In this document: piece by piece, positions 45,517 to 47,688 of the stretch | How the letters are laid out: each line of letters starts with the position of its first letter | How positions within the stretch are numbered: position 1 is the stretch's first letter | Assembly (NCBI GenBank): GCA_002189035.1 | Contig: NEEC01000019.1 | Coordinates: 310,001 to 374,000, forward strand | Origin: Utricularia gibba | Taxonomy: Eukaryota; Plantae; Magnoliophyta | Length of the DNA: 64,000 nt | Direction of reading: 5' to 3' | Notes under the pieces: generated by a model | Database searches by the model: none | Seen by the model: the letters and a program-made list of their open reading frames with translations, nothing else | What the model was told of the DNA's origin: nothing | Program-made: the position numbers and the translations under genes

Positions 45517-47688
45517 TGATAAACGGAAATTCCTAGTGTCATTGCAAAAATAGAAAATTCGTTATCAAATAAATTTATAGTCCCTAATCCTCACAAAATA
45601 CATATTAAACTGAAAATGCACAGTGGAATTCGGGGTCGATCAGAAGGAGCTTGTGCTTGTCTTGTATTTCAACAAATGCAAAATTCAAAGTAGGTAAGTC
45701 TTAGTCTAAGCTCGGACCAACAGTGGTAAACAAGTTCGGTAAACAAGATCGGTAAACAATATCAGGTCTTAACGTTAAAGTAACAGGTACTGGTTTTGTC
45801 TCAGAATAATACTAACGTGCCTTAAAGATCTACAGGTGGTGTGTCCCAAAATTCCTAATTTAATCTACCATGTTCCTATACTCACAACTTCAAATAACCT
45901 AAGTCTACCCAGGTCATTCACCATATTTTTGGCTAAGTTAGTCCTCCATATCATCACCAACCTTACAATTAGTTCTACCCGCATGCAAAGCATATAGAAC
46001 TAGGTCTACCCGATTCTACTGGTTCTACCCCGGACTAACACCTTCTGCTCCCGTCTTGACTTGTTGGTCTACCTCTAAATCAAGCATCCAAGCTGTGAAG
46101 CTACTTGTTACCCTCCTTAGGTCTACCCATGGTTTGATAGAAACAAGAGCTAAGAAAATAAGGTTAATTTTACTAAGACACCTAGACCCGCACCACCATG
46201 CTTCACCTTAAGTCACTCCTAGGGTTTAGCTACTCATGCTTTGAAGGTAAAATGTAATGGCATTAACATAAAATAACGAAAATGTTGAGAACATTGTGTA
46301 GAAGCTAAGAACATATGCAAACGAAAATAAGGCAGTAAAGTTTCTAGATTTCGTCTGCCACTGTTCACAGGCCGGAACAGTGGCGCTGAACTGGGTCTTG
46401 ATCTTCTTCCTTCAAGCTGGAGGTTCTTCTCCCGAAAAATCGCCTTTCTTCCTCCTTCTTCTTCGTGTTTCAGTTGGGGTGGGGGGAGAAACCCCCTCGT
46501 GTGTGCCCTCTGAAAATTCTGGGGTGAACTCCCTTTTCTTTTCTGCGATTCTCTCTCCTCATCTTTCTCTTGCCTCCCACTTCCCAAGGTAAGTACATTC
46601 TCTGACAGATCTGCTGCTCCAGGCCCTGACTTGCAGACTGTTGCCGTGACAGTGTACTCATTGCCCCCTGCACCCTGGTGACTTGCACGAAATCCAGATT
46701 TTTCCTGGATTCTTAGGCTGCTGCTAGACTCCAAAATCGGGTTAGACATGGGGTGGGCTAAATCCTTTGATTTAGCCCACTAATCACACCAAAAATCATA
46801 TTTTCCCTAATCAAATAAAAATACTTAAAACTATAAAATTAACACTTAAACATAATTAAAATCTATGATTTTTCTTATCCTAAAACATGATAATTTGTGT
46901 ATTATCACACTATGCTACAACGACATGAGACTTGTCCCCAAGTCCTACCTAAGACTAACAGAAAACTAGTTCCTTCAGCATCAGTGATAAACATAAAAAC
47001 TGAGAATAAATTCGGTGCATGAGCTATAGAAGTGCAGGTGTGCATGTCATTTCATCACTCAAATGTGCATGAGTAGATTCCTCTTGGGGAGTGTTTTCAA
47101 AGATCATATCCTATTGAATTGATCCTTCCAAAGTCACTTAAGACCACGGTTGCCGACCCATTTTTTCTTCTCCCCTTTTTTTTTCTTTTTCTTTTCCCCC
47201 CTTTTTTTTGGGCAATGAAGGGGCATCTTTTTCCAGACTAATCTGGGCATAATGTGATTGCCCCTTTTCTTCATCAGAGTGTTGGCCAAGCACTCACACC
47301 TTATAACACCGGGCTCCTTCATACTCCTCCGGATTAGTCTATCCCTGCTCACACTTTCACTACTTATTGAGTCCACACATGCTCTTTTAATATGTGCTGC
47401 TTTTTAGGACTTGGGTCTCAATTTTTTTCCTTCTTTTTTTTTCCTTTTTTTTTTTGTCGACCCTTTATTCACCTCTCTTTTTTCATGGTTGGCAACCAGC
47501 TCTGCACTGACTATGAAGTTCAACAATTCATATAAAAGAAACAATCTACATCACTCTCCTTAGATTCCTCTAATCATACACATGCTCTCATAAAATAAAA
47601 AGATAAAAACATGCTCACGGGTATCAAAAAGGTCCACAAAGCTCATGCAACAGAATTCATCTAACAGCTATAATGTTCAATCACATAC
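45517..47688 (-). mobile_element. 3' end of an Athila-like LTR element: 3' non-coding region 47688-46908 and 3'LTR 46907-45517, inserted just after the Harbinger transposase
   Basis: On the minus strand the LTR runs TGATAATACAC...CGTTTATCA (1391 bp, AT-rich start, GC-rich middle). The Athila 3' motif CTTGGGGACAAG lies 23 nt upstream of it. Confidence 0.8.

Follow-up and report, generated by a model that had tools for sequence, protein, structure and literature searches.

The window, by which we mean the whole stretch of DNA analysed here, comprises 64,000 nucleotides of Utricularia gibba (assembly GCA_002189035.1, contig NEEC01000019.1, positions 310,001 to 374,000 of the forward strand). Among the long terminal repeat (LTR) retrotransposons that it contains, two are of most concern: element M, which is read on the minus strand, and element A, an Athila-type element that is nested in M and read on the plus strand. 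At the border between the internal region of M and its putative 3′ LTR, in the zone that holds a polypurine tract (PPT) in A, lie 17 nucleotides that match the 5′ end of tRNA-Asp. The tRNA gene and the components of the border are arranged as follows.

40905-40976, minus strand: intact tRNA-Asp(GTC) gene with a T-run terminator, on the same strand as the 17-mer and 5.9 kb (5932 nt) away from it
45517-46907, minus strand: putative 3′ LTR of M, 1391 nt, TGATAA...TTATCA, both ends putative
46908-46924, minus strand: 17-nt copy of tRNA-Asp(GTC) nucleotides 1-17, sense on the element strand, 16/17 identical, 9/17 purines
46925-46930, minus strand: 6-nt spacer TCTCAT, which separates the motif from the 17-mer
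46931-46943, minus strand: Athila-type pre-LTR motif ACTTGGGGACAAG, 12/13 identical to that of element A and containing TTGGGG
46908-47688, minus strand: 3′-most internal stretch of M, non-coding on both strands and without DNA similarity to A except for the motif

A copy of the tRNA-Asp 5′ end

Read on the minus strand, the sequences follow one another in the order GGACTTGGGGACAAG, TCTCAT, the 17-mer GTCGTTGTAGCATAGTG (46924 to 46908) and TGATAAT. The first 17 nucleotides of the tRNA-Asp(GTC) gene are GTCGTTGTAGTATAGTG, and the lone difference between the two is at nucleotide 11. The similarity begins exactly at G1 of the tRNA, position -1 being mismatched, and ends in the D-loop; sequence and alignment are thus in agreement with an earlier sequence-only reading of this DNA, which had reported a 16/17 match with these limits. 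Local alignment of the site to tRNA-Asp returned nucleotides 1-17 only, and the next 28 nt resembled the tRNA no better than shuffled sequences did.

When both strands of the 64 kb were searched with the first 17 nucleotides of tRNA-Asp, allowing up to three mismatches, only the gene and the 17-mer site were matched, whereas shuffled sequences give an expectation of 0.03 matches. The calculated probability of a match with at most one mismatch at one fixed place is approximately 3e-9. A scan of the window for any 13-mer of tRNA-Asp, with at most one mismatch, found only the gene, the 17-mer and element A's primer-binding site (PBS). Because nothing but the gene and the 17-mer is matched at three mismatches, against the 0.03 expected, the match is far beyond chance, and from its sequence we judge that the 17-mer is derived from tRNA-Asp.

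The sole tRNA that ARAGORN and Rfam identified in the window is the minus-strand tRNA-Asp(GTC) gene at 40905-40976 (Rfam 60.3 bits). At the 17-mer site Rfam detected no tRNA-like structure at E<=10, and a pattern scan found no B-box near the 17-mer on the same strand in the downstream direction. A tRNA gene, a pseudogene or the head of a short interspersed element (SINE) was rejected as an identity for the site, since the similarity stops at nucleotide 17 and neither an Rfam tRNA nor a B-box is present. Two further candidates were also set aside. As a degenerate PBS, only 7 acceptor-stem bases of the site would fit; as a target of 5′ tRNA-derived fragments (5′ tRFs), the site has the wrong polarity, being identical to the fragment and not complementary to it.

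The position of the polypurine tract

The corresponding region of element A, and the PBS that provides the third tRNA-Asp match in the window, are located as follows.

57832-57866, plus strand: junction of A, in which the motif CTTGAGGACAAG is separated from the 3′ LTR by 23 nt with GTGTGGGGGAATA at their end
49041-49059, plus strand: PBS of A, 6 nt after the LTR, complementary at 18/19 positions to the tRNA-Asp 3′ end plus CCA

The motif reads CTTGGGGACAAG in M (46942-46931) and CTTGAGGACAAG in A (57832-57843), and in each element it stands 23 nt before the TG taken as the start of the LTR. In A these 23 nt hold the tract GTGTGGGGGAATA. The positions claimed for the two motifs, for the normal tract of A and for the PBS of A, which had been given as starting at 49041, were all confirmed. 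In 13-nt form (ACTTGRGGACAAG, 12/13 identical) the motif is the only DNA that the stretch 46908-47688 of M has in common with A.

The motif common to M (46931-46943) and A (57831-57843) is a near-palindrome, CTTG-RGGA-CAAG. The fold predicted for M is a hairpin of 7 bp around a GGGA loop (GGACUUG-GGGA-CAAGUCU), and that for A a shorter hairpin. A weaker copy of the motif, TTTGAGGACAAG, occurs at 62508-62519 in the 5′ region of M.

The sequence-only reading placed the 17-mer at the site of the PPT. The 17-mer is indeed in the right zone, but with purines at 9 of its 17 positions, and no run of them, it does not look like a tract abutting U3. The closest runs of purines are located 23 nt upstream of 46907 (GGGGACAAG) and within the putative LTR (AGGATAAGAAAAA). 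A single conserved PPT-3′ LTR junction has been described in 97% of ATHILA elements from six Brassicaceae species (bioRxiv 10.64898/2026.03.20.713144). M departs from that arrangement: the motif is kept, and the 17 nt next to the putative LTR are tRNA sequence in place of a G-rich tract. However, the sequence ‘ttgggg’ has been cited as the conserved PPT core of Athila-like elements, lying 24 nt before the LTR in FIDEL (PMC2844528, citing Wright and Voytas 2002), and TTGGGG is kept inside the motif of M. For this reason M, although it appears to have lost the LTR-proximal tract seen in A, may not be PPT-less.

The start of the putative LTR

The block 45517-46907 is the putative 3′ LTR of M because it follows the motif at the 23-nt spacing seen in A, has a length of 1391 nt and the termini TGATAA...TTATCA, and lies where M needs a 3′ LTR. 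ATHILA elements typically have a TATCA terminus (preprint 10.64898/2026.03.20.713144). A second copy of the block was not found within the window, and for that reason 46907 is to be taken as a putative first LTR base. The earlier statement that the 17-mer abuts the 3′ LTR holds in so far as the 17-mer lies between the motif and the putative LTR; the exact abutment depends on 46907, in a block that is unpaired in the window.

Three candidates for the first LTR base were obtained, 46925, 46907 and approximately 46852. The first arises because the last T of the spacer and G1 of the 17-mer together make a TG. Placements of the LTR start against the LTRs of elements A, B and C, made with MAFFT and with semi-global, local and short-word BLAST alignments, conflict with each other, ranging from 46899-46919 to 46852 at roughly the level of shuffled sequences. 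At 46852, TGTTTAAGTG resembles TGTTAAGTG of A. Depending on the start, the 17-mer may close the internal region as its last 17 nt, open U3 as its first bases, or lie approximately 55 nt upstream of the LTR.

As the termini TGATAA...TTATCA are symmetric, the orientation of the block also had to be checked. The minus-strand orientation is favoured by the coding strand of M, by the motif match and by the sole LTR similarity above noise, which is weak. Insertion of a solo LTR into a tRNA-like sequence was rejected, the flanks being TAGTG and ACAAT with no target duplication.

Two further observations concern the block itself. Its GC-rich core contains a 171-codon open reading frame (ORF) with an ATG start (46234-46749, minus strand) that belongs to no Pfam family and has no homologue in the protein collection searched. 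A perfect hairpin, TGATAAT-ACACAA-ATTATCA, is formed by the initial 20 nt of the putative LTR (46887-46907, minus strand); its arms repeat the terminal inverted repeat of the LTR, and this may be chance in AT-rich sequence.

Element M

Beyond the insertion of A, the internal region of M resumes as follows.

59218-63298, minus strand: rest of the internal region of M in the window, continuous with 47688 before A inserted and cut at 63299 by LTR C
59904-63200, minus strand (outer bounds): broken gag-protease-reverse transcriptase (RT)-integrase remnant of M, collinear with A

By its coding remnants M is assigned to the Athila/Tat type of Ty3/gypsy LTR retrotransposons, as one old and heavily broken copy. 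The remnants are in the order gag, protease, RT, RNase H, integrase on the minus strand, include a Pfam RT_RNaseH_2 match, and in gag, protease, RT and integrase are 22-60% identical to A in amino acid sequence. Damage to M comprises at least four in-frame stops in gag and protease, at least two frameshifts in RT and at least two large deletions, one affecting RNase H and the other removing most of integrase and everything 3′ of it. Since M is cut at 63299 by LTR C, its PBS and 5′ LTR lie outside the window.

No relatives of M were found in the window. The longest stop-free stretch of M gave best matches of 33-51% identity among 1.84 billion representatives (Helianthus, Tanacetum, Vitis and Aristolochia), and no match among 90% protein clusters. 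The 17-mer together with the LTR start gave no matches in metagenome contigs and none in viral contigs. A DNA scan with the motif and spacer gave four matches, all of them chance hits in bacterial coding sequence, and protein-guided scans of viral contigs with the RT pieces of M and A gave no match. Of 12 ORFs of the window that were looked up exactly, among them a 46-aa ORF that spans the junction, none was on record.

Comparison with known systems

Athila, Calypso, Diaspora and FIDEL elements all have a PBS for tRNA-Asp (10.64898/2026.03.20.713144; PMC2844528). The junction of M resembles the canonical ATHILA junction described in the same two sources and present in element A, in having the motif, its distance from the putative LTR (23 nt, as in A) and the TATCA terminus; it differs in the 17 nt next to the putative LTR.

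The closest likeness is to the insertions known as patches. Retroviral RTs patch pieces of co-packaged host RNA into the genome during non-homologous switching, and the reviewed examples, variously described as patch repair or tertiary-template insertions and derived from 7SL and other host RNAs, are short sense inserts with little or no homology at the junctions (PMC4997597). The 17-mer has the same character. Unlike those patches, it is in a plant Ty3/gypsy element, its donor is the primer tRNA species, it ends at the tRNA 5′ terminus and it lies at the PPT/U3 border; the event itself would have to be reconstructed from the sequence left behind.

Fragments of tRNA are known as primers for the minus strand only, and only in Ty1/copia lineages (PMC6317226; PMC5371799). 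The half-tRNA primers of copia, Ty5 and the Osser, Bryco, Gymco-II and Bianca groups have a 3′ end made by cleavage inside the tRNA and pair with a site, beside the LTR, that complements an internal stretch of the tRNA, a layout that the 17-mer recalls. By contrast, in M, a gypsy element, the site precedes the 3′ LTR and would serve in priming the plus strand, a use that is only hypothetical. It is identical to the tRNA and not complementary to it, and the opposite orientation comes without a supporting element. In the bipartite PBS of Ty3 (PMC5371799), also a Ty3/gypsy element, the primer tRNA contacts both the 5′ PBS and U3, at the genome's 3′ end. The 3′ segments of Ty3, however, pair with the tRNA on the RNA genome, being complementary to it, whereas the 17-mer of M is identical to the tRNA and could pair with it only as minus-strand DNA.

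Helenus/TRIMp3 elements provide another case of tRNA-derived sequence associated with an LTR (PMC10886601). In Helenus this is a whole tRNA-like unit, probably a Pol III promoter, conserved in many copies; the site in M is 17 nt in one copy, with neither the B-box nor the tRNA fold that would mark a Helenus-type unit or a tRNA-derived SINE.

The 17-mer therefore falls outside the PPT class because it is not purine-rich, outside the class of tRNA-fragment PBSs because strand, side and superfamily are wrong, and outside the Helenus-type class because there is no tRNA unit. We would place it among host-RNA patch insertions, in a plant gypsy element, and it would be categorically new only if independent copies shared the feature. 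No description of a tRNA 5′ end at the PPT position was found in the literature, of which coverage was incomplete; to that extent the search agrees with the earlier reading, which knew of no such description.

Origin of the 17-mer

The explanation that we favour, and hold to be about evenly poised between right and wrong, is that the 17-mer is the fossil of a single reverse-transcription accident, a switch onto a co-packaged tRNA-Asp. Minus-strand DNA would have been copied from the genomic RNA to just past the start of U3, in the PPT zone, where RT would have left the genomic RNA for the tRNA, entering in the D-loop. Nucleotides 17 down to 1 of the tRNA would then have been copied, with run-off at the tRNA 5′ end, and RT would have resumed on the genomic RNA a few bases beyond the ACTTGGGGACAAG motif, the two templates possibly having the G of CATG in common. 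The cDNA, in which 16-17 nt of sense tRNA sequence replaced the LTR-adjacent bases, would have integrated, and the copy would later have decayed, gained one T-to-C difference and received A and C. A correct plus strand could possibly have been primed from the kept TTGGGG tract or from an RNA remnant of the copied tRNA. We infer the switch itself, the use of tRNA-Asp by M, the position of 46907 as first LTR base and the lack of propagation.

Several observations are consistent with such a switch. The insert is 16/17 identical to the primer tRNA of the lineage and sense on the element strand, as a patched-in RNA would be, and its end coincides with the tRNA 5′ end, as run-off would leave it. A run-off template switch accounts at once for the exact start at G1, for the tRNA species and for the location, whereas a random DNA-level copy would begin at G1 in only approximately 1 in 50-70 cases. 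The sense orientation at the internal/U3 border implies, under the standard scheme of reverse transcription (PMC5371799), that the tRNA served as template for the minus strand. A plus strand reading through the primer tRNA was rejected, as its product would be antisense and beside the 5′ LTR, in the wrong orientation and at the wrong LTR. Of the two readings offered earlier, a one-off template switch and plus-strand priming by the tRNA, the former fits the visible facts, since M is single, old and broken, nothing similar is seen elsewhere in the window, and both A and the literature show an ordinary PPT junction; positive evidence for the latter was not found.

A number of points weigh against the accident. 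Between motif and LTR there are 23 nt, as in A, a length that nothing would oblige a random patch to keep. Clean microhomology is lacking at the entry junction, where TG is present twice, and no more than 1-2 nt are shared at the exit. A cDNA without an LTR-proximal PPT should have difficulty in making a correct plus strand and left end, so that an extra assumption is needed. Weak local alignments place the LTR start anywhere from 46925 to approximately 46852. With no second family member in view, the arrangement may have propagated after all. Lastly, the location of the tRNA-Asp gene, on the same strand and 5.9 kb away, suits an origin at the level of DNA.

Such an origin, which we consider unlikely, would involve a break or deletion at the internal/LTR border after integration, filled from the nearby tRNA-Asp gene or from another. 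Short templated filler DNA is known for end-joining in plants. At 5932 nt, an intact gene in the same orientation is closer than chance would make likely for a family of a few dozen gene copies, and the several large deletions in M imply that breaks and repairs occurred. The proximity may nevertheless be partly a bias of detection, the match being easiest to recognise when the gene is in view. The copy also begins at base 1 of the mature tRNA and includes nothing from the upstream flank of the gene, for which a DNA template gives no reason. Coincidence would be required as well, in that the nearby gene would happen to encode the primer tRNA of the lineage and the patch would happen to fall in the PPT zone with the spacing kept.

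Less probable still is plus-strand priming, in which an Athila-like sublineage uses the 17-mer site instead of a PPT, with the 5′ part of tRNA-Asp as primer. The complement of the 17-mer would pair with tRNA nucleotides 1-17, and the 3′ end at nucleotide 17 would prime from the first base of U3; the primer would be either a free 5′ fragment cleaved in the D-loop or the primer tRNA's own 5′ strand, unwound and cut back by RNase H. The geometry proposed earlier, with the site on minus-strand DNA paired to nucleotides 1-17 and the 3′ end facing U3, is correct. It is exact if the LTR starts at 46907, when the other strand reads TATCA followed by the complement of nucleotides 17-1, the layout of a PBS, and the equal motif spacing of 23 nt in M and A is in keeping with it. 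The 5′ fragments of tRNA-Asp are abundant in plant small-RNA libraries, where they are often listed as ‘miR6300’, and 5′ tRFs of 19 nt build up in pollen, in which they are conserved among plants; their targets are gypsy mRNAs with complementary sites (PMC5605234). Fragments of tRNA are moreover accepted as minus-strand primers in copia-type lineages (PMC6317226; PMC5371799). The known tRNA-Asp fragments are, however, 18-24 nt long and not 17, and the identity stops at nucleotide 17. The site is known from a single degenerate copy, neither the window nor the collections searched having yielded a second; the 17-mer already has a mismatch, the LTR start is putative and the PBS of M is outside the window. 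M also keeps TTGGGG, the cited PPT core (PMC2844528), and no precedent for a tRNA-derived plus-strand primer was found in the literature, within the incomplete coverage noted above.

Equally improbable, in our estimate, is the wider claim of a sublineage in which the LTR-proximal part of the PPT has been replaced by a copy of the first 17 nt of the primer tRNA, so that one tRNA species starts both strands and the product is replication-competent and spreading. The arrangement in such a sublineage would still have originated by template switch.

Still less credible is a reading of 45517-46907 as the 5′ LTR of a non-coding element on the plus strand, with 46908-46924 as its PBS for a 17-nt tRNA-Asp 5′ fragment in the half-tRNA style. 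The symmetric termini give TG...CA in either direction, and the plus strand reads TATCA and then the complement of tRNA nucleotides 17-1. To the right, however, the block has no second copy, and the sequence there, which is without plus-strand coding signal, becomes the minus-strand gag-pol of M, which requires a 3′ LTR here; the motif matches A at 12/13 positions only in the minus reading, and the sole above-noise LTR similarity, weak as it is, is co-oriented with it. Chance resemblance or an assembly artefact is the least probable explanation of all, for although nested repeats are in general hard to assemble, shuffles give 0.03 matches per window at three mismatches, and the junction lies in sequence that is unique within the window and not at a repeat boundary.

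If the template switch was a one-off, the site is a clean natural fossil from a plant retrotransposon whose RT changed template to its own primer tRNA, with a defined entry in the D-loop and run-off at the tRNA 5′ end, a useful example that is unsurprising in principle. Were the same 17-mer to occur in independent young copies, it would be the first tRNA-derived plus-strand primer site, and would link the abundant 5′ tRNA fragments of plants to the replication of retroelements. Nothing in the DNA examined marks the 17-mer as a new priming system, and it is most likely the trace of a one-off copying accident.

Neighbouring elements and genes

Element A is located as follows.

47689-59212, plus strand: element A, Athila-type, nested in M, with gag, protease, RT, RNase H, integrase and a 3′ ORF

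The LTRs of A (47689-49034 and 57867-59212) are 98.3% identical, and its gag-pol region is broken at least six times, by approximately five frame changes and one stop. Its target-site duplication is imperfect, CATAC versus CATAT (47684-47688 and 59213-59217), which is consistent with the 1.7% divergence of its LTRs. A protein search with the 3′ ORF of A at the strict threshold of E<=1e-10 gave no match, and the 24 matches to the PBS of A in viral contigs were all chance matches in GC-rich phage.

Element B, at 25438-30340 on the minus strand, consists of a partial 5′ LTR and a gag-protease region 82-88% identical to that of A, joined within approximately 27 nt to a full 3′ LTR; RT, integrase and the PPT motif of A are absent. 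Judged by this structure it is a deletion derivative of the A family, and it resembles the deletion-based non-autonomous ATHILA elements of the ATHILAfinder preprint (10.64898/2026.03.20.713144). Element C, at 63299-64000 on the plus strand, is a third A-type LTR, 77-83% identical to those of A, situated in M just upstream of the gag remnant. As A and C are both inside M, M has been invaded twice by one younger family, giving a nested Athila cluster. A further A-type LTR fragment (19637-20276) opens the plus-strand interval 19637-23831 and is followed by Ty1/copia coding remnants (SH3_retrovirus, RVT_2).

Window self-matches revealed a short tandem array, its period roughly 40 nt, at 43959-44205, between the tRNA-Asp gene and the putative LTR of M. 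On the other side of the tRNA gene, exons of a BEL1-like homeodomain gene (POX domain, Homeobox_KN; 38318-40605, plus strand) end approximately 300 nt from it. The nested retrotransposons thus lie beside ordinary genes and not in a gene desert.

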